DNA of 64,000 bases, taken from contig CM074806.1 in the NCBI GenBank assembly GCA_037447605.1, positions 620,001-684,000 of the forward strand, in the 5' to 3' direction. The position numbers and the translations under genes were made by a program. Positions 2,847-36,800 of this stretch are shown here, piece after piece. This DNA is from Zygnema circumcarinatum SAG 698-1b. Lineage: Eukaryota > Plantae > Zygnematophyceae. Under the pieces are notes generated by a model. It searched no databases. It saw only the letters and a program-made list of their open reading frames with translations, and was not told where the DNA came from. Position 1 is the first letter of the stretch. Every line of letters begins with the position of its first letter.

Positions 2847-3005
2847 AGGGGGTGTCAGACTTAACAAAATCTTACGAAAAGCGTTACGAAAAAAAAGGTT
2901 ACGAAAGTACTCCGCCGCACGAGGATCGCTATAATACTGGAGTACTCGTTCTGATGTCAAACTTACGAACACGCGTACTGAAATTTTTTAAGTCTGACAC
3001 CCCCT
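2847..3005. mobile_element. 159-bp MITE with AGGGGGTGTCAGACTTAA TIRs (PIF/Harbinger-related by 3-bp TSD)
   Basis: Perfect 18-bp TIRs; TSD ATT at 2844-2846 and 3006-3008; near-identical inverted copy at 3678-3836. Confidence 0.9.
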
Positions 3006-3677
3006 ATTGACAACTAATAGCCAATCACCATCTGGAGCGGGTTATCTTCAATGACGGTCCAGCCAGTCAATATAACGGTATTCTGCCTTTCCTCGAAGTT
3101 GTGACCGTACAGCAATTGTACAAGGGGTAGTGATATTTCCACCCCTTTTTTGGATCCAAACACCCCTTCCCGGCCGGGCAGATTTCAAAAGGGATTAAAA
3201 AGGGAAAATGCTTTTTTAACACCTTTTTGGAATCGATACCCACCTTCTTCCGTCGGATGATTTTATTTTTGCTAACCAAGGAAAATGATACCCCGTCACT
3301 GCATTTTGAATACTGTATCCCGCCTCCCTGAATTTTTTTTTGAGGGAATGAAATATCTGCCTGCCCGAATCCGCTCGAAGCGGAAGATCCGTCCGCCACG
3401 AGATCGCTCGCGGATGTCCGTCCTTCACACGTGTGTGTCAATCGCAGCTGTCGATTCCCTCGCAGATCGCACCACTGCAGGTCACCGTTCGATCTGCAGC
3501 CGGGCTCGATCTTAGCGAATGGAAAGCGCCCACGAGTCCCGTCAAAGCCGGATCGCAAGTACGAGTGCGCGCGTCCCTCGGCCCGAGATCTCGTCATTGT
3601 TAGTTCCCAGCCAATAAAACTCTGCCACGTGTTTCATTTTTTGTCGTGGAAAATTTTGATTGGTCCAAGCTCTCAAT

Positions 3678-3836
3678 AGGGGGTGTCAGACTTAAAAAAT
3701 TTCAGTACGCGTGTTCGTAAGTTTGACATCAGAACGAGTACTCCAGTATAATCGCGATCCTTCTGCGGCGGAGTACTTTCGTAACCTTTTTTTTCGTAAC
3801 GCTTTTCGTAAGATTTTGTTAAGTCTGACACCCCCT
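3678..3836. mobile_element. 159-bp MITE (same family as 2847-3005, opposite orientation) nested in A
   Basis: TSD AAT at 3675-3677 and 3837-3839; the empty site TCTCAATGTACG is seen in the other A copy near 11560-11570. Confidence 0.9.
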
Positions 3837-4078
3837 AATGTACGAAATTCTGGGTTCCTTAAGTTGCGTCCGTACGACATTTGTACGGACAAACTTTTGA
3901 GACGACTTTGGCGGGATACGTGGGCCCGTGCCATTCGCTGTGACCGAGCCCGGCTGCAGATCAAATAGGGATCTGCCGTGTTGCGATCTGCGAGGGAATC
4001 GACGGCTGCGATGACCGCACGCGTGAAAAAAAATTCAGGTAGGCGGGATATTCAAAATGGGGTGACGGGTTATCATTT

Positions 4079-4927
4079 GGGTAGTGATATTTCCACCCCT
4101 TTTTTGGATCCAAACACCCCTTCCCGGCCGGGCAGATTTCAAAAAGGATTAAAAAGGGAAAATGCTTTTTTCACACCTTTTTGGAATCGATACCCACCCT
4201 CCATCGGCAGATTTTATTTTCGCGAAACAAGGAAAATGATAACCCGTCAACCCATTTTGAATATCCCGCCTACCTGAATTTTTTTTCACGCGTGCGGTCA
4301 TCGCAGCCGTCGATTCCCTCGCAGATCGCAACTCGGCAGATCACTATTTGATCTGCAGCCGGGCTCGGTCACAGCGAATGGCAAGTGCCCACGTACCCCG
4401 CCAAAGTCGTCTCAAAAGTTTGTCCGTACAAATGTCGTACGGTCGCAACGTGAGGAACCCAGAATTTCGTACATTGAGACCTTGGAACAATCAAAATTTT
4501 CCGGCTTTGACGGGACTCGTGGGCGCTATCCATTCACTGAGATCAAGCCCGGCTGCAGATCGAACGGTGATCTGCAGTGGTGCGATCTACGAGGAATCGA
4601 CAGCTGCAATTGATACGCACGTGTGAAGGACGGACACCTGCGAACGATCTCGTGGAGGACGGATCTTCCGCTCCGAGCGGATTCGGGCAGGCAGATATTT
4701 CTTTCCCTCAAAAAAACAAATCAGGGAGGCGGGATACAGTATTCAAAATGCGGTGACGGGGTATCATTTTCCTTGGTTAGCAAAAATAAAATCAGCCGAC
4801 GGACGAAGGTGGGTATCGATTCCAAAACGGTGTGAGAAAAGCATTTTCTGTTTTTAATCCCTTTTGAAATCTGCCCGGCCGGGAAGGGGTGTTTGGATCC
4901 AAAAAAGGAGTGGAAATATCACTACCC
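4079..4927. mobile_element. Element B: internally deleted copy of family A (849 bp) inserted in inverse orientation into A's own right TIR
   Basis: GGGTAGTG...CACTACCC termini; 8-bp TSD TATCATTT at 4071-4078 and 4928-4935; the empty site GGGTTATCATTTTCCTTG is present in the 11011-11957 copy. Confidence 0.9.
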
Positions 4928-6047
4928 TATCATTTTCCTTGTTTCGCAGAAATAAAATCTGCCGATGGAGGGTGGGTATCGATTCCAAAAAGGTGTGAAA
5001 AAAGCATTTTCCGTTTTTAATCCTTTTTGAAATCTGCCCGGCTGGGAAGGGGTGTTTGGATCCAAAAAAGGGGTGGAAATATCACTACCCTTGTACAAGC
5101 CCACTTTGAGCCGGATTTGGCGAGACACGTGGGCACGTGCCCTTCGCTGAGACCGAGCCCGACTGCAGATCAAAGGTGATCTGCCGTAGTACAATCTGCG
5201 AGTTAGTCGACGGCGGAGATTCAATACAAGTGCGAAGGACGCACACCCGCGAACGATCTCGTGGCGGACGGATCTTCCGCTCTGAGAAGATTCGAGCAGG
5301 CCGTTACTTTTTTCTCTCCAAAAAACATCAGGGCTAAAATCTGCCCGACGGAAAAAGGTCCGTATCGATTCCAGAAAGGTGTGAAAAAAGCATTTTTCGT
5401 TTTTAATCCTTTTTTTCCTGAAATAGAATCTGCCCGACGAAATAAGGTCTGTGTGTAGACAAAAAAGGTGTGAGAACAGAATTTTCCTTTTTAAAAACTA
5501 GATACAACCATAAGAAATATTTTTTCCCGTGAAAGTGAATTTTTAGTTCGACATGAATTTGTCCGTTTGGCCATCACGGATCGCCTTCTCGCAACCTCGT
5601 CCTACGTGGCCAATCGAACGGTCACGATCTCCTTCCCTGGTGCTCCGGCTCCTCGTCGTCGTCGATCAGCGATGCCACCTTCGCGTGCAGGACCGCTCCG
5701 CGAGTGGCTCCGCCATCAGCGGCCCATCGCGCTGTATGGACATTGTACCAACAATGTACGGACTACCTTGCACTGCCTTGGACGCACATAAACAAACGGC
5801 TGCCGTACGCGTACGGGTACAGAGAATGGGTCAAAAGTCGCAAAAAACGGCGCTTTCCCATACGTCCCCAGACAGCGTCAGCGCTTGTGAGCCAGTTGCG
5901 GTGGCCCGCCGCCGGCACTCCGCTCTACGGCCTCCCCCTCTCGCACTATTTGTCCTTCCCCGTCTCCCTCTCACTCTCACTCGCACTGCCCCTCTCCCTC
6001 CCCCTCTCCCTCACTTCGCTCTCCTTTCCTCTCCTGTGCGCGGCGCC

Positions 6048-9000
6048 ATGGCGTCCGCCACCGCCCTCGTCGTGGCGGCGCTGCTCTGCATCGCCGCCTC
6101 TGCGGACGCCGCGCTCGTGAAGGCCGCGCAGCAGAGTGAGTGGCGCGCAGGCACGCGAGGGCGCGCAGCGCGCGCATGCATGCATGTTTGCATGGCTGCC
6201 TGCGTGAAGGAGGCTGACGGGGAGCGGTCGGGTGGGCGGGCGCAGCGGCGCTGCAGGCCGTGAAGGCGAGTCTGCGGCTGACGGACCCGAAGCTGCCGAA
6301 CTCGTGGAAGGCCTCCTCCGACTGCAGCGCGTGGCGCGGCGTCAAGTGCGACGCTGCGGGGAACGTCCTCTCACTGTGCACGCCTCCTCTCCCTCCTCCG
6401 GGCAGAAGATAATCATTTGTTACTTCTTTCTAGGCGGGCTTGGGAAATTTGCCACCCTCCGAGTTCGTTTTTTTTGTTTTCAAACTGCACTTCTTTTTGC
6501 TTCGTCAGAAGATCTTCCTGTGCCGGGAAAGGCGCCAATGTCTTTCATATTTGCCTGTGCCCATTGCCTCTCATTTTGATTTTTGCCGTCTTATCTGAGT
6601 GCACTTTCTTTTTCTTTCTTATGCTAACGCAATAAATGAGACAACATTTTCTCCACAATTCCTAAAGTCGTGACAAATCCTGGCGACAATCACACAGACA
6701 TTCGAAATTTTCGTTGTTACAGACATTAATGATATGTTCGACTTTTCTCTTGTTTCTTATTTTCTCGTTGATATCTTCTCACTTTTTTACGCAGAACTAT
6801 TACTCCAGTGCCTACTTATATACTTGGCATTGAATTTAATAAGACAGTTCCCAATAAAAATCCACTCACTAACAATGGAACCATCTCTCCAAAGATATCA
6901 GAGCTCAAGAAATTGGAGATCCTGTGAGTTATATTGAAGCCATCTCTAGGCTAAGTGAGCCTGCTTCTCATTCAGTTTGTCTTGATGGTTTCGGATTCCT
7001 TAAAGCCATCAAAAGTTGTAGATGTACATGGGGCTGCTTGACGCTTTAAGTGACTACCATTTGAGATTTTTCGGATGATGAGATTTTTAGTCGGATTCAG
7101 TTTTGGGCGCTGCGGGGTTTCGAATTGTTTAATTGTGGTGGCGTAGTTCTGAGTTGGATTCTATCTCTCCTTACGCTTTCTGAGGATAATTTCACGTCGG
7201 ATGATGGGAGCTGCAGGATTCTTCTTGCGACGGGCCTAGTCGAAGACATACCGGAGGAACTTGGAAATTTGAAAAAACTGAGAATTCTGTAAGAACAAAG
7301 TCCCACTTCACCCAGTGCAGGGGTCGAATTCTGAACATCGTCGTCATAACCGTGTAAAGATTTGGCGACTGCAGAGAGTTTTCCGGGTTCAGAAAATTTC
7401 CTGAATCTTACGAGAAGAATCATAGGACAAACAATTTCTTACCACTCTGCTTTTTCTTGTGTGTTTGGGATGCAGCGAGTTGAGCGGGAACAATTTTCCT
7501 TCCAATATGCCAAACAGTGTAAAAATGTTGACGAGTCTGGAGTACCTGTACGCCGCTTACACTTTTGTCCCCCTCGGCAGCTTACCCATTAGTAGGCAGT
7601 TGCATTTCAAGGGAAAACGACAGACTTTTCAAGCTTCTCCTTCTCCTTTCTTGAAGACATTTCTTCTAACGTGAAGCGTATTGTCATGTCATGTGACTTT
7701 TACAATGCGTGGAGAGTTTAACAGTGTGATTTTTCACTAGTTAGGGTCAGAGTGGCATTAGGATTGCTGTTCCGATCGATGCTTTGAGTTGAGGTGTAAG
7801 GGCCACTGAAAGTTAATTTTTCTCGTATTCTTTCATATTTGTCTTTGAGCTGATTGCCAGAGCTTGCAGCGACTGCATGTTGAAAGGGAAGGTCCCCACT
7901 GGAATCAGCAGCCTCTTGAAATTGCAGTGGTTGTAAGTTCCCTTTCCCTTATTGGCGGCTACTTTTGACTCTTTTTAATATGGAAGAAACTGGCATGTTT
8001 TTTTTTCTTACAAAAAATGCTTTGTGTGGCAGTTGCAAGAACGCTCCCATAAGTCATGAATCGGTTGCATGCTAGAATGCACCAATGTACGAAGCAATGT
8101 TGTGAATATTCTTCTTAAATCAAGAGCTCCCCCATGCCACTACTTCAGGTGGCCTCATGTTTTTGATGCATTGCAAATTGGATTTCGCAGGGATTTCTCC
8201 ACCAATTCGTTAAGCGGTAAAATTCCGCCGGGCATTGTCAACCTGCCAAACCTTTCAACACTGTAAGTGCTTCCAACTGTTGCCATATCAACTTTCATCC
8301 GTGCATTGAAATCCCCGAGGTTGCTGCTTATTGGAGGTTGTTCTGAAATGTTGGTGTGTTGCAGGGCGTTCCAGAATAACATACTAAGTGGCGAAATTCC
8401 TGTTCGCTCCTCAAAGCTGAAACCATTGGCCATCTTGTAAGTAGCCATAGACAAAGCGCTTCAACTTCTTTCCTTCGCATTTTTAGGGAATGTTGCCCAT
8501 GTGTATCTGAGCGATTACCCATGTCAGTGCAATGGCTCAAACGTTCTAAAACATGCCACTTCCTTGCTTAATGGGCTAGTTGTGTTCCCTATTCCTCAGG
8601 GTCATGGGTGTCAACAAGTTCTCGGGCAAAATTCCAAAGTGGGTCTTCACTGTTCCATTTGTGTAAGTTTGCTGACCTGCAGAACCCACCATTCTGAATT
8701 GATCTGCTGAGTTTCAGTGATATGGAGATTTACGGAGATTCCCTGCTCATGAAGATTCCGCTATTTAACAGTCGGAACTGCACTTTCATGCGTGCAGATG
8801 CACAGAGTCTCATGAAGGACAATTGCACTCGTTACCTTTCCATTTTGCACCTATCTTACCCTGCGACCTTCACACTTTCACATTCTGCTTCTTTTCTTTT
8901 TTCCTTCGTCTCTCACCTTCTCTCTCTCTCTCTCTCGCCTTTTCTCTCACGTCCTCTCTCTCCTCTCTCTCTCACGTCCTCTCTCTCCTCTCTCTCTCTC

Positions 9001-10150
9001 TGTCCTTTCTTTTTGTTCTAAATTTCTCGATGTTTTCTGTAATCCACTTTGATCTCAGGTTCTTATTTTCTAACCGGTTGGTTGGAAAAATTCCGAAAAT
9101 TCCAAACTCCACCAATGTATTGTAAGTGCTTGCATAGAAATCAAGAGCGAGTACCTCTGTGCGTTGCAAATTTGATCAGGAAAGAATAAATGGTTGTATT
9201 TATTTTATTGAAACTTAGTTCTTACGAACGATTGAAGTCTTTTCACTGGCCTGCCAAGTCCCTCTGTTCCCCGAAAAAGGTCTGTTTTTTTATTGCTGTT
9301 GGTTGATCTTTGATTTCTTAGCTTCGTTTCATGTTCAATCCAATTTGTTCTTTTGTTTGCGTGAGCTTTAACTGATGCACAGATAGTACAGCTGCTGTCA
9401 TATCTTCTTGCCCGGATACGAAGTTACGGCCACATTAGGACGTCTAGTGTGTCACTTTTTTGAGTAATTTAATGTTTGTGATTCTTGTAATAGATTTTGT
9501 CCTCCATTCTAACCACTGCCCTTCCCACTGACTCCTTGGATGCTGCAGATCGCTGAGCTCAAACTATCTTTCTGGAGAGATAGTGATTTCAGACGAGAGT
9601 CCAGAGTCTTCATTTTACTTCTCTGCGAACTATTTCTCTTCTGTCACTGGAGGAAATCCCAATTATGTATTAGTCGATGACAACTGCTTATCCGGAACCC
9701 AGGCAGTCGAATTCGGACCACAGAAGTCAAACAAAGTATGCAATAATTTCTGCAATGCGAAGCAAAAGGGCGGAGCCTGCGGGAAGAACGGAGTCTGCGG
9801 CCCCGGCGGTGCCAAGGCCCCGACCTGCACTTGCAAGAAGGGCTACTTCACCTTCGTCAAAAAATTCACATGCACGAAAGGTATTTTCCCCTTTCCATTC
9901 TCACTGCTGTTTGTTTTTTTTGTCAGCTTTTATGATTGAGGGTGTATTTGCACTCAAGCCTCCTACCTTGAAGTTTGTTTCTAGCAACGCGCTGTACTTT
10001 CTAAGTTTTGATGGGTTTTGCAAGCGACTCGAGAAAGCCTATCCGGTTAAGTCCTGCTTGTACTAACTCTAGTCCCTGGATGCTCCTGTTTCCTGCCCCT
10101 TAGACGCGCCACCAAGCCCTAGCGCCCCTGCGGTCGGAGGGAGGACTTGA
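6048..10150 (+). CDS. Secreted LRR protein with C-terminal EGF-like Cys domain (paralogue 1), multi-exon
   Basis: Signal peptide MASATALVVAALLCIAASADA; plant LRRNT_2-type cap (W..SSDCSAWRGVKCD); series of ~72-bp phase-2 LRR exons (e.g. DFSTNSLSGKIPPGIVNLPNLSTL); exon with DDNCL...CNNFCNAK..GACGKNGVC...CTCKKGY; last exon 10104-10150 (DAPPSPSAPAVGGRT*). All exons examined are open with GT-AG boundaries. Confidence 0.85.
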
Positions 10151-22000: not shown

Positions 22001-22694
22001 TCCACTACCTCCCTCCCTCCCTCCCTCCCTCCCTCCCTCTCCTCCCTCCCCTCCCACCCCTCCCTCCCTCCCTCCCTCCCTCCCTCCTCCCCTCCTCCCT
22101 CCCTCCCCTCCCCTCCTCCCTCCTCCCTCCCCTCCCCTCCTCCCTCCCTCCCTCCTCCCTCCCTCCCTCCCTCCCTCCCCTCCCCTCCCTCCCTCCTCCC
22201 TCCCTCCCCTCCTCCCCTCCTCCCTCCCTCCCTCCCTCCCTCCCTCCCTCCCTCCCGGCCAATGGCGAACAAACTGACAGCGCGACCACGTTCCCCGTCG
22301 TGTCGCACGTGACGCCCGCCCACGTGGCACAGTCCGCGGAGGCCCGCCACGTGGCGAGCACCTTGGGGTTGCGCAGAGCGAGGGCCCCCTTCACCGCCTG
22401 CAGCGCCGCTGCACCCGCCCGCCCGCCCGCAAGCGTCAGCCCCATACATACATACATACATACATACATACATACATACATACATACATACATACATACA
22501 TACATACATACATGTGCGCATGCCTTCATGCATGCCTGCATGCATGCATGTATGGGGGGCATGCTTGGGGGCGGCATCTGGCCAGGCATGCCCGCGCGTC
22601 ACTCACCCTGCTGCGCGGTATTCACACGTGCGGATTCCGCAGAGGTGGCGAGGCAGAGCAGCGCCGCCAGGAGGAGGGCGGCGGAGGACGCCAT
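19079..22694 (-). CDS. Secreted LRR + EGF-like protein (paralogue 3, more diverged, inverted)
   Basis: MASSAALLLAALLCLATSAESA; cap W.ASADCATWAGVTCD; 72-bp LRR exon TLYYLDLVGDIPQEIVTLKNLKFL; EGF exon CNNFCNAKQTGGACGKNGVC; last exon GNAPPPPVMRRRT*. Middle LRR exons were not all traced. Confidence 0.8.
21990..22254. repeat. (CCCT)n polypyrimidine/polypurine tract in intron 2 of LRR paralogue 3
   Basis: Directly visible. Confidence 0.9.
22443..22512. repeat. (CATA)n microsatellite in intron 1 of LRR paralogue 3
   Basis: About 17 perfect units. Confidence 0.95.
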
Positions 22695-23689
22695 GGCGCC
22701 TCCGCGTGGAGAGCTCGAGCCGAGAGGGAGGAGGGGAGGGCAAGGGAAGGGGAGATTGAGAAGGGGGGTGAAGGGAGAGAGAGAGACGGCGAGAGAGAGA
22801 GGGGAAGAGGGAGAGAGGGGAAGAGGGAGAGGGAGAGAGGGCGAGGTAGAGGGAGTGGGAGAGGGAGATAGGGAGAGGGAGAGAGGGATATGGGAGGGGA
22901 GGTGTAGAGGGAGAGGGAGGGACGGGCGGCCGCCAGAGGGCGGGCCGGTCCGGATAGGTCCGGCGGCGGAGCCAATGGGCGGCGAACCCAATGGGCGGCG
23001 GCGCGCACCTGCGGTGTTGAACGCTTGTCGTATTGGCGAGCAGTCAACGCACGGCGGTCAAGGGCAGCCTGGCGCCGCGCCGGAGTGGTCGACGCAGCGA
23101 ATGGGGTGGCTCTGTCACGCGTGGCAATTGCCACGTCGAGAGCGAACCAGCTTTCAGGAGAGTAGTATCTGCAAATCAGAGGGCGACACGTAATTAGTGA
23201 GCTGGCTTCTCTAGTAGGTTGCGTACAATGTTTTGTCGAGAGGCGGGGAATGCTGAGTCATGTAATTTGTCGTTTGCGACGAGACGAAGTATGCCGCGAT
23301 TTTGCCGGTGTATCGGTGACTATTGCCGACGACAACCGGTCGGAAACTCGGCCGGCGGAACTTCTGCCGGCTGGTAAAGACACGTTGGCAATACCGTGGG
23401 TGATCCGATATCGGTCGGTCCTGTCCAGCTGGCTAAGTACATGGCAATTTTCTATTGGCCTACATTTACCGACACGCGTTCGAAACCATTTATTATTATA
23501 TTTTTTTGTCGGTCACCTGGCGAGTACGGCTGAAATGGTCCGAAGCCCAGCTAATAACAGAATGCCACGTGTAGATCGCGTCGGTCATTTCAAGATTCCG
23601 CTCAGATCCCTTAATCTTCGGATTCTTTGGCACGTGTCCTGACCCAGTGTCGGCGCCGCTGTCGGCTTCTGCACGAAAGCACCGACAAA

Positions 23690-24000
23690 ACTCACTCGTA
23701 CGGAGTACTGACTATTTATACAGCTGCGCACTGAACCGAACCCACCAAAAACGTACGATCCGTCGCCTTTCATCACCCATTCGTACAGCCGATCGTACGT
23801 TAACGACCATTTGCGTACATTTCCAGTCACCTCTCCGTACATGTTTGTACACTCTCTTCGTCCGTTACCGCCGCCTTCTGCCGCTCACGTGTCCCTGTCT
23901 TCTTCCCCGTCTAAAAGTACTTTTTTACGTACGAAACGCCGTCAGTCCATGCCTTCACTGTACGGAAAAATTTCCGTACAACGTTCGTACTGTACGATTA
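23690..24000. promoter_or_regulatory. Dense GTAC/CGTAC cluster in the divergent intergenic region (candidate SBP/SPL-box sites)
   Basis: 14 GTAC cores counted in ~310 bp, versus about 1-2 expected by chance. Confidence 0.55.
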
Positions 24001-24104
24001 AGGTTTTGTCGACCTCCTTACCGGGAGGACCCGAGGGCTTAGCGGCGAGGGGTGGGGCGGGGTTCGGGGGAGGCGGGGCCTGGGGGGGGCGGCGGGGGGC
24101 GGCC

Positions 24105-27100
24105 ATGAAGGGGGCGCAAGGGGGGTCGCGAGGGGCGCAGAGGCGGCCATGGCGGCCATGGCGGCCGCAGCTCGCCTTCACGCTCTGCGGGCTGGCGGTG
24201 GTGGCGTGGCTCGCGGGGGGCATGCTGCGGGACCACTCCGCGCTCTCGCTGCGCAGCCATGGCTCCGCGCTCCTCGCGCGGCGAACCCTAGAAACCCTAA
24301 AACCGCTCAGCGCGCTGCTGGAGACGGAGGAGAAGTCTCTGGAAGGGCGGGCCGGGTCCCTGGAGGCTCCCAAAACCCTGACGCTCTCCTCGGAGGGTTC
24401 AGACGCCCTCCGTCCTGCAGCAGACGCGGCGGCGGTTCTGCTCTGCGGGGGCGGCCTGGAGGAGCGCCTGCACGCCATCTGCACGGCCAAGGCGCTGACA
24501 GACGCGGCGGGAGGCATGCCGCTGCGCATCGTGTGGAGCTCGGATCCATGGCTGCCAGCCACACTCTTCGGGGAGCTTTTTTCTTCCACCAATGGGGACT
24601 TGGACGTGGTAGACGATCCCTCTGGAAGCTTCCGGCTGCCGGCCACGTGGCAGCCGTGGGAGTACGTGGCGGAGGTGATCACGGACGCCTGCAGGGCGCC
24701 ACGTGGCAGTGGGGGGGAGGAGCTGGGGCCTGCCAACTGGGACCGCCAGGTGGCACCTCCTCGGGGGCTCCACGTCAGCCCTAATGTGACCGCATGCGAG
24801 TTGCGGCAGGCCCCGCTCGGACCAATGGCGGTGTGCCAAGTGGCGGAGAGTGTGCGCGCGTGCTACCGCCAGCTGGCAGTGGTTGCTGATGTCACTGACA
24901 TGCTGGCAGGTCTCAATTGGTCAAAGATCGAAGCGAGCGTCGGAGTGCTCGCGCAGAGCAGGCCTCCCTCGGACCCACCTTCCCGGAAGCTTCCTCAGTG
25001 CAGAATTCTGGGCACGAATGCGACACGAAATGTGATGGGCCGAGAAAGTAAAAATTTTAAAGATGGTGGGAAGTGGAGCTTGCAGCTTCCAAGAAGGTGC
25101 GTGGAAGCTTCTCAGTCGCGGGAAAGTATTGCGAACCAGACGCTGATTGCCATGGTGGAGGAGGTGCTGAGGGACCCAAAAGTAGATTTTTTTATGGGGG
25201 GGTCGGCGCTGGAGGTGATTGATTGGATCGAGGGGAAAATTCATCCGGATCGGAAGATTGAGCGGTTGGGATATGCAACACTCGGAATGCGGGTGAGAGC
25301 TTGTTTAAAGAAGCATTTGCGAGAAAAATTGAATCCTCTAAAGTCTAAAAGCAGAAATTAACGGTGAGGCGTAGAAAGCGCACATACCTTCTGCTATCTT
25401 ATGTTCAGAACTTACTCTAACAATGGAAGGAAGAGCGTGCTCTTACTTTGTCTTAGGTTGAACAAACGACAGTGTCCTGTGTTCGCCCTGTGCGCATAGA
25501 AGGTTTTTTAGGTCTGGAACCCGACAACCCTAACAACCCTTCAAATTATTCGCAAAATTTTCCGCGTGGGTGCAGCTTCTGTGCCAAGGCTCAGACTCCG
25601 ACAACGAGGGCCTTCAAAAATGGAGCCTCGAAGATGTTCAAGCAGTGGGCGTTAAAAGAATGCCACTTGTCGCCTGCGCGAGGCGCCAGCTGGCAGAGCT
25701 TCTTGTTCTCTCACGCACTAAGTCCCTGATCCATATGTTTCACAGTGGAGGATCGGAGTTCATCGAAGCTCGGAGGAAGGGAGAGGGGCAGGGAGGGGAG
25801 GGAGGGGAGAGGAGCAGGAGGGAGGGAGATGACATGGTTGCTACAGTGAGTCTCTGCGATAATGCGCCTCTTAAAACGATTCAGAAGCGGCAGTGGACGG
25901 CATACATTGATGTGAACGGTGAGGAGGATAATGCAGTGAGGTTTTCCTCAGTTTAGAGCAGCTACTCTTGAATTCCCGCGTCACATTAACTTCATAATTT
26001 TGGTCAAGAATAGAGGGAAGGGTTGTTGGTTTTTCTTACCCCTCCTCTCTCTCTCTCGTCCGCCCAGCCCATACCTTGATACCTCTTAGCTTTGATTGAA
26101 AATGGGAAGGAGTGTCTGAGTTGTCTCCTATACTCCTCCGCTTCCTCCTTCCCCCCCCCCACCATTCGTTCTTTCCCATTTTCGCTTCCCTTAATCTAGG
26201 TTAGGCCTTGTTCAATTTGACAGATGAAGTTAATTTTTTGAGGTTGTGTGGGGGTGCAGAGAAAGAAAAGTTGTTGTATTGTGCGATGCCTAAGGTCGCC
26301 TGCACGACTTTGCGATCATGGCTTCGCCGACTCAAGGGCCTTCCCGGTAAGCTCGTGAAGGTCCTTATTAAACTCCAAAGGCTCGTTTTTAAGCTGTTTA
26401 ACTCAGTGCCTTGTGCATTTTGGGATTGAAAAACGTCGGTTTCTCTGCACTTTCTCAAGGTTTCAGCTTTACAGCAGGTTTGAGATATTCTAGATTCAGA
26501 AGTTTCGATATTTTTTAGTGTTCAAAAAGGTGTGTTGTAGGCTTCTTAGGACCTTTAAACATAGGCGCATTTGAAGGTTTTGGTTTCTTCAAATTGGTCG
26601 AGAGGACTAGATTTTTTTTTAAAAGTTGAAGGATGTGAGGCTCCTTCGTTCAACTTCTCAAGTTCTCTGTGTCTTAATCCCTTACGGACTTTAGATTACC
26701 TAGACTTTTTGGACATTTTAAGGAGATTGGATAGGCTGTCTTTAGTGTTGGCTTCGGAATGAGACGATGAAGATGGCTTTTAGAGTTCTTCGACTGACTG
26801 AACTGAAGTGTGCTGTTCATGGAACCGCGTCGACGACTTCAAGAACAGACTTGAAAGAACCCGAAGACATTCACATCAAAAGTACGCCATTCTTCTTTCC
26901 TTCAGATGGAATGGATACCACAGTAGATGGGTTGATGCAATTTAGGGCTTTTTCTGTTAAAAGACCTTTCCTCTTCTTGTTTGTGAAAGGTGAAGAAAGT
27001 TGGGACTGCATCATTAACATTTGCTTTTGGAAAAACTTGGGTCCTTGTTTTCAGAAAAGAATGGTTTATCAGTTCTTCAATCCCACTACTCGGAGAGCCA

Positions 27101-27680
27101 AATCATTCAACTCCTGACTGATCCCAGGATGTTCCGATTCACCTTTGTACGGAATCCTTGGAACCGCATCCTCTCCGCCTACTTGGACAAGCACATCTTG
27201 GGAGGTGTCGTGGAAAAAAATCGACACATTTGGAACGAAAGATTCTTCTGGTCCCTTCCCAAAAAACTCATTCCCAGCCGAAAAACCGACGGATTGATGA
27301 GCTTCCATGACTTTGTCGTGAACGTGGGCCGAGTCATCCTCGCCAACCGAGCCTCAATGGACCCCCACATTGCTCCGCAGATCGATCTGTGTGCTCTGAA
27401 TTCAATCAAATATCACTTTGTGGGTCGGTTTGAGCAGTTTTCAGCGGATGCTAAGAACCTCTCCTCCCTGCTTAAGCTCGCAGAGAGGGGTTTGGCTCAG
27501 CCCCACTACGACCAGTCGGCGCACAGGACCCACTCGGAGAGGAAGATCGAGGAGGCCTACGACCGGCGGACGGTGGAGGAGGTCTCCGAGGTCTTTTCTA
27601 TGGACAGAGCGTTTCCGTTAAACGGTGTCAGTTTTGAGCCGCCTCCGCTGCAGTTAAGCAAACAGTCGGCGAGCAGGTGA
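24105..27680 (+). CDS. Type II membrane protein: fucosyltransferase-like (GT-B) domain fused to a Sulfotransfer_2 carbohydrate sulfotransferase domain
   Basis: Predicted exons 24105-25292, 25576-25845 (or 25935), 26205-~26345, ~26849-26881, ~27053-27680, with compatible phases. Signal anchor LAFTLCGLAVVAWLAGG; GT-like GGGLEERLHAIC..A..L....LRIVW and QLAELLVLSRTKSLI; sulfotransferase 5'-PSB KLLYCAMPKVACTT, 3'-PB FTFVRNPWNRILSAY, and DPHIAPQIDLC / YHFVGRFE. Confidence 0.7.
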
Positions 27681-29572
27681 AGGGAGCTGCTGCTGCTGCT
27701 GTTGGGGGTGGGGATTTGATACCAATTCTTTTTCTATTCGTTTTTTTTTTTTTTTTTTTTTTTTTCCCCTTTCCGTGCACTAAAAAGTGCCCAATAAATG
27801 TAGTTATTACTTTTATTTACCGTAAAACCGAACAGGTTGAGAAATTTTTAAATGATTTTACTTAATTTCTCAATTCTCAATCTTATCGAAGAGGCTTGAA
27901 CTTTGGATACTCGATGTCGAAACTTTTTCGATTTAAGAAAACGACAAGGCTTAAGAAAAAAGTTCAACGACTCAACATGTTCGGCCGCACGTGTGGACTC
28001 CACTTTCTGTCACGTTGGTTCCGTACGACTCGAGGGATCTGGTTAACCCAGGGTCCATTTTTGCCGTACGACACTTCCCATGATCAGATCAACAATTTCT
28101 GTACATACGACCGGATCCACGCACTTTGCGCTTTCCAACGTGGCCACTGACGTGGCGCCGTCCGCGAGGCGGCGGACCGTCCGCTGATGAGGCCGCGAAG
28201 TTAAACAGAGAGCGAGTAGCCGTATGGTACGGTCTTAGGGTACAACCTGCCAGGATGTACGGTGGCGCACCGGGGGGAAAATGGACGGTCAGGATTGAAC
28301 GATGCTAGGCGTCAGAAAAAACCAGTTTGTGGGAAACTGGAAACCTGTACGGACGATAACAGCACATCCCTGTATTGACGGCCAGATTGTGTGGCAGAAT
28401 CAGATTTTTTATCTACCAATATGAAAACGCCACGTGGCAAGCTTGTCGTGGATTGTGCTAATAGTGGGACCTGAAACACGATACGATTACGATGAGATCC
28501 GCATTTGGCCAACCAGAGCACGTCACGTGTCGTCTGTGGCAGAAAATAACTATTAGATCGCGACAGATTCTCCCCGTCCATTAATTTCAATTTTGCCCGC
28601 CGTACCGTACCTATTTCAGCCCCCATTTTAAGAAATCGATGTTCTTGTTTTTTTTGCGGCGCCGCAAAAATTCCAGAAATTCCGATTCTCCGAACCTTCC
28701 ACGCGCGCCGCTACGTGGCGCCATCTGAGCGCTTCTTCGCCACGTGTACACCACCCATTGCCAGTCACTCCGATTCTGTCCACGTGGCCGCCACCTCCCT
28801 TCGTCCCTGCCTGCCACGTGGCCCATCGGTCGCCGGTCAACCATCCCACTGGCGCGCGCCGCGTGCCGGCAGGCCGCGGGCCGGCCGTACGGACGGGTGC
28901 CACCTGGAGGGCCCATGGCGCGCGTCCCTTCCCACCGCCGTACAAATTGGGGCTCCATGCTGTTCCGTTAAACAGGCAAAGCTCGGCCAGTCAGGTGCCG
29001 CCACGTGGTTAACCCTTTGGACGGACGCGCGTCTGGCAGCGCCGACAACGGGCCGCGCCTTGGACGGCGCCGCCTTTTGCGGTCCGTGAAACGCGGAGCA
29101 ATAGTTTTGGGGAACGGACGTTTGGAAACTTTTGACGCTTAGACAGCGTGTGGACGAATTCGAGCGCGCCACGCGTCCCAAAACTGCCCGCAGAACCGTC
29201 CGGGCAGGAAATAATTTCTTGGTGAGGCTCCTGCGCGGAACGGCCCGAAAAGTTGACTGGGCGGGGCTGCACGTGCGAGCTGTCACGGGCGGACTGCGGA
29301 CCGCCGCTGGCAGTCAGGGCGGGGGATTGGTGGGAGGGAGTGGCAGACAGAGAGGAGAGGGAGAGGGGGAGAGGGGGAGAGGGAGAGGGAGAGGGAGAGG
29401 GAGAGGGAGAGGGAGAGGGNNNNNNNNNNGGGAGAGGGAGAGGGAGAGGGAGAGGGAGAGGGAGAACGGGGAGAGGGAGAACGGGGAGAGAGGGAGGGAG
29501 AGGGAAGAGGGAGAGGGAGAGGAAGAGGAAGAGAGAGCGGAGGAGGGAGGGAGGGAGGGAGGGAGGGAGGGG

Positions 29573-32500
29573 ATGGCTCTGGGAGAGCGGGTGTTCAAGG
29601 CGGCGCCGCCGCCTCTTCCCCTGAAGCCCTTCCCGGGGAGCTTGCCGAAATTCCTGAGCCGGCGGGCGCTGCTGCTGCCGCTGATGCTCGCTACGTGTCT
29701 GCTGCTGCGCGCGGAGATCCCGCTGCTCTCGGCCAGTCGCGGCCGCGCACGTGGCGTCGCGATGATGATGGAGCCCATCGCCCTGGAGATGATCAGCGGG
29801 GGCCCGCAGCTTCGCGCCGCGTGGGAGGGGGGGGGGAGAGCGCGCGCCCGGGGCGGGGAGAGGGAGGGAGTGCGAATTGGGGAAGGGCGGGAAGTGGGTT
29901 TTTTGGAGGGGGAAGAGGAGGAGGTGACACGTGTCGAGGGGGGAGGAGGGAGTACAGATGGCGCAGCAGTAGTGGAGTATGACAGTGCGGGGGGGGCGTA
30001 TGAGTTGGCGATGGCTGGCGGGGGAAGGGGGGGGGAAGGGGGGAATGGGACGGAAGCTTCTATGGAGGCGCGAGGGTATGTACTGACGCAGGAAGAGAGT
30101 GATGTAGTGAGGGAGACAAGTGATGTTGCAGATGGCGCGAGGGGGAGGGGAGAGGGGAAGGATGTGCTGAAGCAAGTGGTGGGGAGTGGGAGGAGGGTGA
30201 GTGCGGGAGGGGAAGTGGGAGAGGGAGAGAGAGGAGACGGAGGGGGAGAGGGAGAGGAGCGGGAGAGGGAGGAAGGAGGTGGTGGTAGTGAACAGGGAAG
30301 CGGTTCATCTCAATCCGCGTATTCGCGGGAGATTCACGATAGCAGTGATGATGAGGAGGATGAGCGGCAGCAGAGAGAGGATCTCACGGCGACTGCAGCG
30401 CAAATGTTTCGACAGTAAGTGGAAGCTTGAGCTGCCCAACTCTCACTGCGAATATCGAGATTTTATGACCGCTTTAACGCATTCTTAACGTATTCACTTC
30501 CTTTCACCCATTAGGTTTTTTTAATGCACATCATCCTTGGAGTTCACCTCCGCTTGCGCACTCATAGAAGTAGTTCGCTGTCGAACTACTTCTATAGATT
30601 TGTATGTCCTGTATGGTTTCTCTCTAAGGTGGTTTTTAACCTATAACCTTCTGGGGACCCGTAGTTTATGTGTAACTAGTAAATACAGTGGGAGTTCAGC
30701 GAGCACGCTTAACCCTAATCGGTTAATCCTTCCTATCTTAAAAACCTTGGTTAGTGTGAACCTAGCTAAAGTAATCACTGTTTGTTGTGGCTGTCGAAGT
30801 GACATGAAACCTACATGCAACATCATTTTGTTGCTTGTTTTCTCTTCTCCTTTACCCAACTACACACGCTCTCTATCCCTCGTCCTATCTCCCTCCCTCT
30901 CCTTTGTTCTGTCCCGCAGTCTCCTTAGTTTTTTTTGGTATTTGAGTAGGTAATGATGCGACCCCATATCTGTTCTACACGCTTATTTTAAAACTTCCTC
31001 CTTTGTTCTTCCTGAAACAATGATATCACAGGAAATATCATCAATGAAGCTACAGATTTTGTGAAGTCATCTTCAATTCCATCTGCCCCATTTCATTTTC
31101 ATTTTTTTTTTGCCCCCCCTCTTTTCGACTGGTCGAGTCCATAGCTTTTCTTCTGAAGGAAAGAATCGCCCATAAAGTTTGGACACCGCTTCTTTAGAAT
31201 GCACTGTAGTATGATGTGACCTGACGTTCTATGTGTCCCGTTTTCCGTTCAGCAGACCTGCACCAGTTCCTCATGAATCTCCGTCGGCGAGGAACCGGCG
31301 CTGCTTTGGGCGATATATTTACATGTACGACCTTCCCCCCATGTTCAACATGGACTTTCTCGCGAATTGCCGAAAGATTCACAGAACTCACAATATGTGT
31401 AAAGCCTTCAACAATTCGGGAATGGGACGACCTGCTCGAGTGAGGAGAGGGAGAGACGGGACAGACTTAGAGCTCCTTCCGAGAGGTTCATGGTTCGAGA
31501 CGGACCAATTTTCCCTGGAGATAACGTTCCATGCGCGGATGATGGAGTATTCGTGCCTCACAACGGACCCGGAACAGGCAACGGTGTTCTATGTGCCGTA
31601 CTATGCGGGTCTCGCGATCTTCCGAAGTTTGTATGAGAGCGACTTTGAAGAGAGAGATCGCCACAATAGGCTTCTAATGGCTTGGCTGAAGGAGAGACCC
31701 TGGTGGGGGAGGTTCCATGGGAGAGATCATCTTTTTGTTGTGACGAGAGTCATGATCGACTTTGCGAGGACTATTGTTAAGAAGGAATGGGGCAACACTT
31801 TGATGAGGTGCGTTCTGAAACATTATTAGGGAATTCGGTTCTATGGTTATTCACGTGATGGGGTTTCTGAAGGGAGAAGAGGGGGGGGGGGGGGGGGGGA
31901 AGGGAGGGAGTGAGGGGGGTGAGGGAGGGAGATGGGGGGAGAGGGAGAGGGGAAGGGAAAAAGGGGGAGATAGAGGGAGGGAGAGGGTTGGGAGGGAGAG
32001 TGGGGAGGAGGGGGAGGGAGAGGGGTGGGAGGGAGAGTGGGGAGGAGGGGGAGGGAGGGGGGGGGGGAGGGAGAAGATTAGGAGGGCCTATTCATGTTCC
32101 TTGAATCGTTGGCAGTACAAGTTTATAAACTTCAAAACCTCTTTAAAGTCAAACCCAGAGAATAGAGGAACTTATTTCTTTTTCCCCTCCCCACTCCTCT
32201 TTTCTCTTCTCTGTCTCTTTCTACCTTTGCACCACAACAGCATGTCCCACATGAGGAACGCTACAGTTCTCTCCATAGAAGGACACCACCATAGGCAATT
32301 ACTGAACACAGTTTCAGTTCCGTATCCCACATCCTTCCACCCCGAAACGGAGGAAGAAATCAAGACGTGGCAAAACCTTGTCCGAACTTTTCCGCGAAAG
32401 TACCGAATTGCGTTCGGAGGAGTTGGCCACGGAATGGGAGCGAAGATTCGCGGAAGGCTCGCAGACTTGTGCATTCGGGCGAAGCCGTACTGCCGACTTT

Positions 32501-33169
32501 TCCACTGCGGAAAGCGAATGTGTATGAGGCCCCATAATGTGATATGGCATTACATGGGGGCAGATTTCTGCTTCCAACCGCCGGGAGATACTCCGACTCG
32601 CAAAGGAATGTTCGACTGCATGTTGGCGGGAGGAATTCCGGTCATTTTCCACGAACTTACGGCGTTCCGGTGAGGCTTCTTTTAGATAGAAAACATGTCT
32701 GCATCTTTGTTTCTAAGACTTTAGAAGCCTGCTTCCGAAATCTGTTTGAAGTTCTTGAGTCCCCAGAGCCTTAAAAAATCTCGATTAAAAAAAGCTTGCG
32801 ATCCTACCCCAGACCTTGTTCTATGTTTTAACTCGGGCCTTTCCTGGAGGTTAATTTCTCAGGTATTTCTGGCACCTTCCGAAGAATCACAGCACTTATT
32901 CCGTATTTCACAGTCGAGAGGATTTCTGGAAAGATAAGGGAGCGTCGTTGATGCGAAAACTTAGGGATATTTCTCCGGAAGAGGTGCAGAGAATGCGGGA
33001 AACTGTGATTCAGTTAATTCCGCAGCTTCTGTATGCGAGACCGGGGGAGAGGCTGGAGGGGACGAGGGATGCTTTCAGCACGTCGGTGGAGGGGGTTGTG
33101 CAGAAGGTGTCGAAATTGAACATGAAAGATCATCCGAGGTTGAGAATGGCTGACTGGTCGAAATCGTGA
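29573..33169 (+). CDS. GT47 (exostosin) glycosyltransferase, MUR3/KATAMARI1/XLT2-like clade
   Basis: TM anchor then a Gly/Glu-rich stem (exon 1 to 30414); C.GRYIYMYDLP..FN; WFETDQFSLEITFH.RM..Y.CLT.DP..A..FYVPYYAG; GRDH; VPYPTSFHP; FCFQPPGDTPTRKGMFDCMLAGGIPVIF; last exon YFWHLP...MRETVIQLIPQLLY. Confidence 0.9.
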
Positions 33170-33817: not shown

Positions 33818-36800
33818 CGGAGGGAGGACGAACCCTGGCTGGGCACTAGGTTGTAGCTTTAATTCATATATATATTTTTTTTTTGATGGAACGGCAGCAT
33901 TTGCCTGAGACATCCGTGTACATGCGACCTTTCATATTATTCATATCAGGCGGCCGCTTATGGCAACTTCCAGTTTTTCTCTTTCATCTTCTGTGTTTTT
34001 TTCCGATTCTTCTTTTGTTGGTTTGGAGCCTCTCTCTGCTTCTTCAGCGATAGCTATTGAAATAAAAATAAAAAAGTAAAAAAAGCATCAGAGCGCAAGC
34101 GATTCGCCTCTGCAAAACAATAATTGTAATTTATAAAAAAAAAAAAAAAAAATAGCTAGTCAAATATACAAAGGAAACCTCTGATCTCATGTATATCACC
34201 GCGTACACTCTTCTTTTGTACGGTCATGTACGGACGACTTCGTCCTCTCTGCTACATGGCAAAAAGCCAAGGAGGGCCGGACTCCATTGTCTGTACAAAC
34301 CAATCAGACCTTGCCACGTTAGCAAAATATGTCAACGTGGCAGAGGCTGATTGGCTTACAATTAGGAGGGTACCTTCAATTGTGAGCCACCCCAAAAGAA
34401 GAGGGAAGTGGAAGAGAGAAACCGAAGGGCAAACATTAAGAGTCTCTCCACATCCATGGCGGGGCATCTGGGCCCTCCCGCTCCCTCTCCTCTCCTTCCC
34501 GTCCTCCCCTCCGCCATAGCCGGATGCCCCGAGCTTCTCTCCCTCCTCGACGAGTTCCGCCCGGAACTCGACACTCTGGAATTGCCACGACACCTGAAAA
34601 CGGGACAGCAACTGGAAACGGAGCAGCCACAGCATGTAGAGCCATTCACAGATGCCACGTGGCTGGCCCACTTGGAGCTGCTCTTCGTCCTCCGCTCGCA
34701 CCGCTCTGAGGCCTTTCGGGCCTTTCGGAAGGCGCTGGCGGCGGGCCCCGCGAGCAATGGGGAGGAGGCGGCTGCCTCAGCGAGGTGGATGTTTTGTTTT
34801 CCGACTGGTTTTTCTTTTTGACATTTTTTTTTCTTTGAAGCAAAGGTATCGAAGTTTGCACAAGGGAGAGGTTGGTCTTAAATTGAGTATCATTTCGATT
34901 TTTTTTTGCCTTGTTTTAATTGGTTTCAAGAGCCTATACAAAAGCTCTCTTTCGTGAATTGGGTCCTTCAAAAATCTTGGGGTTTGAGTTCTGGGTTTTG
35001 AGGGGATTTTGGGTTTTTAATCTCTAGTCTTCGGTGGGGTTTCGGTATAATTTATTTAACTACGGGGTACTTGCATTTGAGGATGTTTAGTAGTTTTCAA
35101 GCAGGAAATGAGTGAAGCGATTTCTGAAGAAATAGTGTTACTGTTACTTGTATTTTCCATTTTTCTAGCACTCTATCCCCTTGCCCCAAATTTTATCCCC
35201 TCAGTTTCCTCTTTTCCACAGCATTCTCTCCTTCATACCTCAACTTGCCCTTCCTTCCCTCTCCCTTCCCCCCCTCTCCCTCCCTCACCCCTCCCCCTCT
35301 TCTCCTTCTCTCCCGTTTTTCCCCCCTCCCTCCCTCCCTTCCTCCCTCCCCCCTCCCCTCTTCTCCTTCTCTCCCATTTCNNNNNNNNNNCGGAGGGAGG
35401 ACGAACCCTGGCTGGGCACTAGGTTGTAGCTTTAATTCATATATATATTTTTTTTTTGATGGAACGGCAGCATTTGCCTGAGACATCCGTGTACATGCGA
35501 CCTTTCATATTATTCATATCAGGCGGCCGCTTATGGCAACTTCCAGTTTTTCTCTTTCATCTTCTGTGTTTTTTTCCGATTCTTCTTTTGTTGGTTTGGA
35601 GCCTCTCTCTGCTTCTTCAGCGATAGCTATTGAAATAAAAATAAAAAAGTAAAAAAAGCATCAGAGCGCAAGCGATTCGCCTCTGCAAAACAATAATTGT
35701 AATTTATAAAAAAAAAAAAAAAAAATAGCTAGTCAAATATACAAAGGAAACCTCTGATCTCATGTATATCACCGCGTACACTCTTCTTTTGTACGGTCAT
35801 GTACGGACGACTTCGTCCTCTCTGCTACATGGCAAAAAGCCAAGGAGGGCCGGACTCCATTGTCTGTACAAACCAATCAGACCTTGCCACGTTAGCAAAA
35901 TATGTCAACGTGGCAGAGGCTGATTGGCTTACAATTAGGAGGGTACCTTCAATTGTGAGCCACCCCAAAAGAAGAGGGAAGTGGAAGAGAGAAACCGAAG
36001 GGCAAACATTAAGAGTCTCTCCACATCCATGGCGGGGCATCTGGGCCCTCCCGCTCCCTCTCCTCTCCTTCCCGTCCTCCCCTCCGCCATAGCCGGATGC
36101 CCCGAGCTTCTCTCCCTCCTCGACGAGTTCCGCCCGGAACTCGACACTCTGGAATTGCCACGACACCTGAAAACGGGACAGCAACTGGAAACGGAGCAGC
36201 CACAGCATGTAGAGCCATTCACAGATGCCACGTGGCTGGCCCACTTGGAGCTGCTCTTCGTCCTCCGCTCGCACCGCTCTGAGGCCTTTCGGGCCTTTCG
36301 GAAGGCGCTGGCGGCGGGCCCCGCGAGCAATGGGGAGGAGGCGGCTGCCTCAGCGAGGTGGATGTTTTGTTTTCCGACTGGTTTTTCTTTTTGACATTTT
36401 TTTTTCTTTGAAGCAAAGGTATCGAAGTTTGCACAAGGGAGAGGTTGGTCTTAAATTGAGTATCATTTCGATTTTTTTTTGCCTTGTTTTAATTGGTTTC
36501 AAGAGCCTATACAAAAGCTCTCTTTCGTGAATTGGGTCCTTCAAAAATCTTGGGGTTTGAGTTCTGGGTTTTGAGGGGATTTTGGGTTTTTAATCTCTAG
36601 TCTTCGGTGGGGTTTCGGTATAATTTATTTAACTACGGGGTACTTGCATTTGAGGATGTTTAGTAGTTTTCAAGCAGGAAATGAGTGAAGCGATTTCTGA
36701 AGAAATAGTGTTACTGTTACTTGTATTTTCCATTTTTCTAGCACTCTATCCCCTTGCCCCAAATTTTATCCCCTCAGTTTCCTCTTTTCCACAGCATTCT

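Follow-up and report, generated by a model that had tools for sequence, protein, structure and literature searches.

The stretch of DNA considered here is a 64,000-nucleotide window of the Zygnema circumcarinatum SAG 698-1b genome (assembly GCA_037447605.1, contig CM074806.1, positions 620,001 to 684,000 of the forward strand; coordinates below are those of the window). It carries one transcribed five-exon gene, with a single open reading frame (ORF) running in frame from 24105 to a stop codon at 27678-27680, in which a predicted sulfotransferase is joined to a large N-terminal domain that probably resembles the fucosyltransferases. The product, 758 residues long, would be a type II membrane protein of the Golgi type. 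Catalysis would lie with the C-terminal domain, of the HNK-1ST/CHST-like Sulfotransfer_2 kind, which would move sulfate from 3'-phosphoadenosine 5'-phosphosulfate (PAPS) to a hydroxyl group on a sugar within a secreted polysaccharide or glycoprotein, such as a wall or mucilage glycan. The luminal domain that precedes it, about 400 residues of putative GT-B fold, would have kept framework motifs and lost the residues that handle GDP-fucose. As a pseudo-glycosyltransferase it would most likely recognize a specific glycan, which may be fucosylated, and present it to the active site of the sulfotransferase. Because the fusion is transcribed, its sulfotransferase motifs are intact and the arrangement is conserved elsewhere, the gene is a candidate enzyme for the sulfation of secreted algal glycans.

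The gene model is established by assembled transcripts. Seven sequencing runs from three studies each contain 72-80% of the sampled words of the stretch. Contigs of four of these runs, representing all three studies, were aligned onto 23000-28500; the RNA nature of the runs was guessed from their records. Four GT..AG joints (25292/25576, 25918/26260, 26346/26849 and 26881/27055) are present in every one of the four runs. A single 1601-nt contig of run X1 spans 24122-25291, 25575-25917 and 26259-26346 with no mismatch. This contig covers exons 1, 2 and 3, and thus joins the N-terminal domain to the PAPS-binding loop in one transcript. All donors are GT and all acceptors AG, the intron phases are 0, 1, 1 and 1, each exon is free of stops in its own frame, and splicing restores the codons GAG, GAC and AAA at the three junctions that interrupt a codon. 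The exon lengths (1188+343+87+33+626 = 2277 nt) correspond to 758 codons and a stop. The program-made ORF list gives a 516-codon ORF at 23811-25361, followed by fragments at 25570-25956, 26208-26429 and 27021-27680. It is the in-frame stop at 25359-25361, inside intron 1, that causes the gene to be listed as two ORF fragments. An earlier note on this DNA had proposed that these fragments splice into one type II membrane protein, and both the spliced contigs and the same architecture in other organisms bear this out. Its junction 25292-25576 is exact in the contigs. Its second junction, 25845 (or 25935)-26205, was misplaced, the actual joint being 25918/26260, and its exon set lacked the 33-nt micro-exon at 26849-26881 and the last acceptor at 27055.

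The same note had set one transcript outcome against a fusion: transcripts ending at the 25361 stop together with a separate first exon for the sulfotransferase. Contigs that retain introns have a depth of 2-33, versus 88-743 for spliced ones, so only a small, unspliced fraction reads on to the 25361 stop. Such a distribution of depths is that of RNA libraries with some pre-mRNA. Two separate genes, the sulfotransferase having its own first exon, are rejected, since the aligned contigs contain no other joint into 26260 and the fused order is conserved. A retrocopy is an unlikely source of the spliced contigs, given that the same runs, which are only guessed to be RNA, also hold the low-depth intron-containing contigs. 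A word-index protein search with the exon-1 ORF gave no match in a collection of proteins of 284-903 residues, the window's own product included, so at this length the collection lacks the gene. In all four runs, some contigs also enter or leave the gene at 24167, 24454, 24694, 25814 and 27705 with unrelated sequence, in loose ends of at most 255 nt. Most probably the assembly graph was joined there through GC-rich or low-complexity words that other transcripts have in common with the gene; an alternative 3' end or a paralogue is a less probable source.

The predicted protein has the features of a secretory-pathway enzyme. Residues 1-22 are basic and are followed by the anchor LAFTLCGLAVVAWLAGGML, which is the most hydrophobic 19-residue window of exon 1. 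Four N-x-S/T sequons lie in exon 1, and several cysteines are invariant in the alignment of the fusion family. The basic tail, anchor and sequons agree with a type II signal anchor and a protein body that lies in the lumen. A hydrophobic N-terminal anchor is also present in those relatives that retain an N-terminus (P0002-P0006), and the predicted 758-residue protein is most likely located in the Golgi.

The C-terminal part is assigned from its sequence to the Sulfotransfer_2 family, with intact PAPS-binding motifs. Individual exon sequences and an orthologous protein, P0002, served in the searches and modelling as stand-ins for the joined 758-residue product. Exon 5 alone matches PF03567 (Sulfotransfer_2) with an E value of 5.1e-20 and 73.1 bits, against a gathering cut-off of 22. 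In P0002 the match reaches 87.2 bits (E 2.5e-24) over profile positions 4-247, at residues 591-821. Pfam gave no match on the first two ORF fragments (23811-25361 and 25570-25956) and a weak PF03567 match on the 26208 fragment. The loop that binds the 5'-phosphosulfate, P-K-x-x-x-T, is present in exon 3 as YCAMPKVACTT and is conserved in P0002 and in two environmental loci, L003 and L007. The 3'-phosphate-binding motif R-x-P-x-x-R-x-x-S is present as FVRNPWNRILSAY, identical in the window and L003 and differing in P0002 by one S for A. The three sequences that can be aligned throughout (window, P0002 and L003) all keep PKVACTT, RNPWNRILSAY and H-x-x-P-Q. We take YCAMPKVACTT, FVRNPWNRILSAY and DPHIAPQ to be the 5'-phosphosulfate-binding (5'-PSB), 3'-phosphate-binding (3'-PB) and His-containing segments of the HNK-1ST/C4ST group; YC.MPKVACT with FVRNP..R..SAY are presumably the PSB and PB motifs of this carbohydrate-directed group. 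The family identity and intact motifs predicted by the earlier note are thus found in the PF03567 match and kept in relatives, and the individual features it named (the anchor LAFTLCGLAVVAWLAGGML, GGGLEERL, SVGVLAQS, QLAELLVLS, YCAMPKVACTT and FVRNPWNRILSAY) are all present.

A search with a profile of the sulfotransferase domain retrieved 893 proteins of 139-443 residues. The best matches are last-exon fragments of the same fusion family on environmental contigs, with 35-64% identity. They are followed by an unnamed 349-residue protein of Closterium sp. Yama58-4 (E 3.7e-29) and, at E 1e-21 and weaker, by proteins of about 250 residues annotated as 'sulfotransferase family 2', many of them bacterial. 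One of these relatives of about 250 residues outside the family is named chondroitin/dermatan 4-sulfotransferase by JGI. Neither phmmer nor the domain profile retrieved anything from the PDB sequences, and HS2ST and HS6ST chains stayed beyond the reach of the profile at E up to 1. When proteins of 460-1465 residues were searched with the sulfotransferase part of P0002, the sole match was P0002 itself, with no TPST-like protein of about 500 residues. The PDB reach of the profile and this length-restricted search argue that the domain lies outside the TPST/HS6ST branch of PF03567.

The N-terminal domain is rare, and the fusion recurs in distant organisms. With exon 1 as query, an exhaustive phmmer search of 1.84 billion cluster representatives yielded no more than six relatives. 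Five of them, P0001 and P0003-P0006, were called as genes on short contigs of metagenome or Logan origin. All but one of the five end no more than about 20 residues from the conserved sequence LG(F/Y)xTxGM(R/Q), which marks the exon-1 boundary in the window, and these four calls are read-throughs into intron 1. The fifth, P0006, is a 175-residue N-terminal fragment. P0002 is a complete ORF of 837 residues from a EukProt Trinity transcriptome and contains both the N-terminal domain and PF03567. It is the same fusion, independently seen as RNA in another organism. An exact-sequence look-up found no contig on record that carries P0002, because it is derived from a transcriptome. Conservation of the fusion was followed by tblastn of P0002 on fetched contigs and by direct reading of L003. 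In this locus (Logan run SRR9302961), exons 1, 2 and 3 are followed by a micro-exon of 33 nt (DLPEPELIHKRS) and by the last exon, so that order and intron positions are those of the window; it is AT-rich and comes from a clearly different organism. L007 contains exons 2 and 3 and the last exon. L001 contains exons 1-2 and then reaches the contig end; its sample also yielded a last exon that matches (P0009, L006). Members of the fusion family are 25-42% identical and share about 20 invariant residues. The fusion appears from these alignments to be old and to have been kept across distant members. Two distinct members with the N-terminal domain (P0004 and P0005; L003 and L004) occur in the single run SRR9302961, the source of which carries at least two paralogues or two species with the gene.

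A diverged copy of the whole arrangement is probably present in a named zygnematophyte. At the Closterium sp. Yama58-4 locus (L005, CANIUD010000132.1:47510-64967), the annotated 349-residue model covers the sulfotransferase only. Weak matches to the family profile that resemble the N-terminal domain lie upstream of it, collinear and on the same strand: LQRLCQASALSTFHNITVDVLWH, CRLYDETMRCYQSLEPSLAVRAMVYGEDVGRVRASTGVLL (E 1.5e-12) and SQLADLFLLADASSLIFTHKSPAFTFVVARGS. The 349-residue model seems to be the 3' part of a larger gene. At locus coordinates 2396-9458 the segments resembling the N-terminal domain each occur in 2-4 copies (for example at 4099-4422, 4275-4799 and 4958-5113), a sign that exons were duplicated locally or that haplotypes were assembled together.

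The N-terminal domain probably has a fucosyltransferase-type GT-B fold. The model that supports this was computed for residues 60-600 of P0002 with a ten-row alignment, and thus represents the orthologue rather than the window domain. Its mean predicted local distance difference test (pLDDT) score is 50; residues 10-190 of the model are well predicted, at about 85, and the remainder poorly, in part on account of a 170-residue disordered insertion. In a Foldseek search of the PDB the top five matches are NodZ entries, the best at E 0.04, with AtFUT1 lower among unrelated matches. The six best matches by VIA-align against 48,161 representative chains are NodZ (Z 5.8), POFUT1 (5.6), AtFUT1 (5.3), POFUT2 (5.2 and 5.1) and FUT8 (4.6), and GT9 enzymes and unrelated Rossmann proteins rank next. 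Six top ranks that all fall within one small superfamily are not expected by chance. An Atlas shape search leads to NodZ/O-FucT/FUT8_N_cat, GT11 and plant O-FucT clusters. Language-model features of window exon 1 point to FUT8_N_cat, O-FucT, XG_FTase, GT11 and NodZ clusters, and those of the P0002 domain, which is 41% identical to that of the window, to the same clan. The predicted order of elements in P0002 begins with strand ALLFS, loop GDLGSR, a helix and strand LRVVWS. Further on come strand GGVLIQ, an insertion, a helix, strand YFFGG, a helix, a strand, helix QLAELFALS, strand HLIYNF and the SGATDF helix. This order presumably fits the three-motif layout of the fucosyltransferase superfamily, and we take GGGLEERL to lie at the strand-loop-helix that carries GxFGNQ-type motifs there. 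Profile methods gave a different outcome. Pfam at E up to 10, run on ten member sequences, produced no PF05830, PF19745, PF10250, PF01531 or PF03254, and searches of PDB sequences with phmmer and the family profile of the N-terminal domain returned nothing relevant. The fucosyltransferase-like fold proposed in the earlier note hence has weak, concordant structural and language-model evidence on its side and no sequence-profile match.

The would-be donor site of this domain is altered and invariant at once. Canonical fucosyltransferases have G-V-H-V-R as motif I and (A/S)(T/S)DD as motif II. The motif-I-equivalent strand of the fusion family is (S/G)-G-V-(L/F)-x-Q-(G/S/A)-G-x-P, in which Q284 is invariant in all six members, in place of H-x-R-(R/H)-x-D. 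The motif-II equivalent reads F-F-x-G-G-(S/G/A)-x; it lacks the acidic residues, and its G365 and G366 do not vary among the same six. Two further elements are invariant throughout (six of six): the N-terminal loop G-x-L-x-x-R (G116, L118 and R121) and W144-x-S146-D147 after the second strand. A disordered insertion of variable length, 45-190 residues, follows motif I. Motif III is retained, as QLAE(L/M)xxL(S/Q)xTxSLIxxxxSGx(T/S)(E/D)F in five loci; we assume this QLAE..SG segment to be the published type (D/E)-(L/M)-x-x-L-S ... S-(T/S)-F-S. In FUT8, POFUT and NodZ motif III contacts the nucleotide. To our knowledge the motif-I arginine is required in every characterized superfamily member (FUT8 R365, POFUT1 R240, POFUT2 R294), and its replacement by glutamine makes a canonical GDP-fucose transferase unlikely. 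Invariance at the would-be site implies that the pocket is still used, for glycan or nucleotide binding or for altered chemistry. The altered donor motif noticed earlier in the window alone thus recurs, as glutamine for arginine, in all six relatives, and extends to the Gly-Gly of motif II. Since the replacement is invariant, it favours the suggestion of the earlier note that the domain may serve for binding or as a scaffold.

With moderate confidence, the N-terminal domain may be regarded as a non-catalytic module that recognizes and positions the acceptor for the attached sulfotransferase. The substrate is most likely a glycan rather than a protein or a small molecule. Several points weigh against this account. 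Neither Pfam nor the PDB yielded a sequence link at profile level to a fucosyltransferase family, each structural score lies below the level at which its tool is considered meaningful, and the three structural searches start from one model; the fold assignment is accordingly weak. The equivalence of Q284 with the motif-I arginine would follow from motif order and predicted secondary structure rather than from a residue-level structural alignment. The invariant glutamine, W-x-S-D and the retained motif III could equally be a working, non-canonical active site. Outside the fusion family, the proteins closest to the sulfotransferase are uncharacterized. In addition, contig depth is 1.3-2.5 times higher for the last exon than for exon 1, which may reflect 3' bias or an extra shorter transcript.

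The strongest competing explanation, possible and clearly less probable, is a true bifunctional enzyme, in which an active GT-B domain with a non-canonical donor site adds fucose or another sugar, and the sulfotransferase then modifies the added sugar or its neighbour. The superfamily fold and framework motifs are kept, including a well-conserved motif III, and Q284, G365-G366, W144-x-S146-D147 and R121 are invariant and not drifting, which suggests a function at these positions in a fusion that is old and retained in members only 25-42% identical. Against this stand the glutamine that takes the place of the essential motif-I arginine in all members, the Gly-Gly in place of the acidic residues of motif II, and the fact that no donor can be proposed from the sequence. 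A specific form of the idea is slightly more doubtful still: a working glycosyltransferase with a donor site rebuilt around the glutamine and W-x-S-D would glycosylate and then sulfate in one pass, as a route to the sulfated mucilage of streptophyte algae, and would be the founder of a new glycosyltransferase family.

An acceptor-positioning role would also fall away if the N-terminal domain were a mere long stem, an oligomerization region or a Golgi-retention region, its likeness to fucosyltransferases being a modelling artefact or a generic Rossmann-like similarity. The structural scores, all under the tools' meaningful level, allow for this, as do the GT9 heptosyltransferases and unrelated Rossmann proteins close behind in the lists, the want of a profile match to any glycosyltransferase family in Pfam or the PDB, and the poor prediction of the C-terminal half of the model. 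This explanation is nevertheless improbable. The six best of 48,161 chains fall in one small superfamily, and an independent method based on sequence features assigns two members of about 40% identity to that clan. The motifs also succeed one another as they do in the superfamily, from the Gly loop to the strand that opens the second Rossmann half, the strand behind the helix, the E-L-x-x-L-S helix and S-G-x-T-E-F, and about 20 invariant residues at 25-42% identity exceed what a stem needs. Least probable of all, and very unlikely, is a sulfotransferase acting on a non-glycan (tyrosine of secreted peptides, a lipid or a small molecule) recognized by the N-terminal domain, as the PSB and PB motifs are, we presume, those of the HNK-1ST/C4ST carbohydrate group, the partner domain appears to have a sugar-transferase fold, and no protein of TPST length was reached among those of 460-1465 residues. 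The nearest relatives outside the family, uncharacterized proteins of about 250 residues of which many are bacterial, leave some room for it, as does the fact that PF03567 also covers plant TPST (PMC12506393), yet plant TPST is of HS6ST type (PMC12506393) and no HS6ST or HS2ST chain of the PDB was reached.

Comparison with known systems places the protein between established types. With HNK-1ST and CHST8-14 it shares the predicted type II Golgi topology, PF03567 and the motifs P-K-V-A-C-T-T, R-N-P-x-x-R-x-x-S-A-Y and H-x-x-P-Q. In those enzymes the stem is short, whereas here about 500 residues, including the GT-B-like domain, precede the catalytic domain; by profile search, moreover, the nearest relatives are mostly bacterial or environmental proteins of about 250 residues, not animal CHSTs. 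NodZ and FUT8 (GT23), POFUT1 (GT65), POFUT2 (GT68), GT11 and AtFUT1 (GT37) are the best structural and language-model neighbours of the N-terminal domain, in which, as in the superfamily, the Gly loop is followed by the strands of motif I and motif II and then by a motif-III helix with S-x-x-(T/S)-x-F. It differs from that superfamily in having G-V-L-x-Q for G-V-H-V-R, G-G for (T/S)-D-D, no Pfam or PDB profile match, an insertion of 45-190 residues after motif I and a fused sulfotransferase. A conceptual parallel is NDST, a type II Golgi chain of a deacetylase and a C-terminal Sulfotransfer_1-type domain, both activities of which have been demonstrated. Like NDST, the fusion protein would combine a sugar-handling domain with a C-terminal PAPS-dependent sulfotransferase and couple two steps or recognitions on one glycan; the domains are unrelated in sequence. 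A sulfotransferase/hydrolase fusion of the brown alga N. decipiens, supported by mRNA and placed in the sulfated fucan pathway, is absent from two other brown algae compared (PMC6418280). It resembles the present case as an mRNA-supported fusion of an algal sulfotransferase domain to a second enzyme-like domain, and differs in partner domain, lineage and domain order; the window fusion, in contrast, recurs in several distant organisms. AtTPST, which is of HS6ST type, is the sole PF03567 protein of Arabidopsis (PMC12506393). It likewise has PF03567 and is membrane-bound in the secretory pathway; unlike the fusion it has about 500 residues and no glycosyltransferase-like domain, and it was out of reach of the search among proteins of 460-1465 residues. 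In the literature searched, no description of a fucosyltransferase-like/sulfotransferase fusion was found.

For the algae related to land plants we know of no enzyme to which the sulfation of glycans has been assigned, and the gene provides an expressed, concrete candidate for this activity in streptophyte algae. The domain combination is new and built from two known kinds, and the N-terminal domain is without a family model. This domain would represent either a glycosyltransferase fold re-used for glycan recognition by another enzyme or an unrecognized glycosyltransferase family, and it merits family definition under either reading. Existing gene models need correction, both in Closterium, where only the sulfotransferase part is annotated, and among the metagenome and Logan calls that read into intron 1. 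A 2025 survey of the family reported CHST-type carbohydrate sulfotransferases to be absent from streptophytes, charophytes included (PMC12506393). The window gene, its Closterium relative and the environmental orthologues show that this absence does not hold, and the Closterium protein does so by itself. As far as the enzymes are concerned, the earlier note was justified in calling glycan sulfation in streptophytes poorly documented (PMC12506393), but the PF03567 protein of Closterium was already, unnamed, in NCBI.

Features of the fusion gene in the window.
Feature	Position	Strand	Basis
Minimal 5' untranslated region	24072..24104	+	Contigs begin at 24072/24073 (runs X2, X3); length is a lower bound
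Exon 1, coding sequence, residues 1-396: basic cytosolic tail, predicted signal anchor, stem, most of the putative fucosyltransferase-fold domain	24105..25292	+	Contigs, translation
Predicted type II signal anchor LAFTLCGLAVVAWLAGGML, residues 23-41	24171..24227	+	Best 19-residue Kyte-Doolittle window, mean 2.05
N-terminal glycine loop GGGLEERL, residues 114-121; G116, L118, R121 invariant	24444..24467	+	Family alignment
Putative motif-I-equivalent strand SVGVLAQS, residues 278-285; G280, Q284 invariant 6/6	24936..24959	+	Alignment; strand predicted from orthologue model
Putative motif-II-equivalent strand FFMGGSA, residues 362-368; G365, G366 invariant	25188..25208	+	Alignment; equivalence from known motif order
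Intron 1, GT..AG, phase 0; contains in-frame stop 25359-25361	25293..25575	+	Joint in 4 runs
Exon 2, residues 397-510 and first base of codon 511: end of the putative fucosyltransferase-fold domain, Gly/Glu-rich linker, conserved LC...WT.Y.DV lead-in to sulfotransferase	25576..25918	+	Contigs, translation, alignment
Motif-III-like segment QLAELLVLSRTKSLIHMFHSGGSEF	25687..25761	+	CA(Q/R)RQLAE(L/M)..L...SLI....SG.(T/S)(E/D)F in 5 loci
Intron 2, GT..AG, phase 1	25919..26259	+	Joint in 4 runs
Exon 3, start of Sulfotransfer_2; loop YCAMPKVACTT at 26277-26309	26260..26346	+	PF03567 positions 8-33, E 0.0017, 28 residues
Intron 3, GT..AG, phase 1	26347..26848	+	Joint in 4 runs
33-nt micro-exon, (D)LKEPEDIHIK(K)	26849..26881	+	Contigs; kept as ALKEPEDIHDI in P0002 and DLPEPELIHKRS in L003
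Intron 4, GT..AG, phase 1	26882..27054	+	Joint in 4 runs
Exon 5, coding sequence and stop, main body of Sulfotransfer_2; FVRNPWNRILSAY at 27144-27182, DPHIAPQ at 27360-27380	27055..27680	+	PF03567
3' untranslated region, at least to 27725	27681..27725	+	Contigs break at T-run 27726-27777

A gene for a GT47 exostosin-type glycosyltransferase lies at 31233-32673 (+), about 3.5 kb downstream on the same strand (PF03016, E 3e-29 and 1e-17). This neighbour is compatible with a role in wall or secreted glycans and proves nothing. The GT47 gene falls into two ORFs, apparently parted by an intron or insert of low complexity that is rich in Gly and Glu. Between it and the fusion gene, at 29300-29800, an assembly gap (a run of N, XXXX in translations) interrupts a GC-rich low-complexity tract coding for Gly, Glu and Arg. 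Just upstream of the promoter region of the fusion gene, at 22300-23200, lies a GC-rich microsatellite-like tract that translates into IHTY and Gly-Arg-Glu repeats. Further downstream, 34252-34821 and 35825-36394 contain identical ORF sets 1573 bp apart, in which 34252-34701 and 35825-36274 have the same 149-residue translation; this indicates a tandem duplication or a repeat element.

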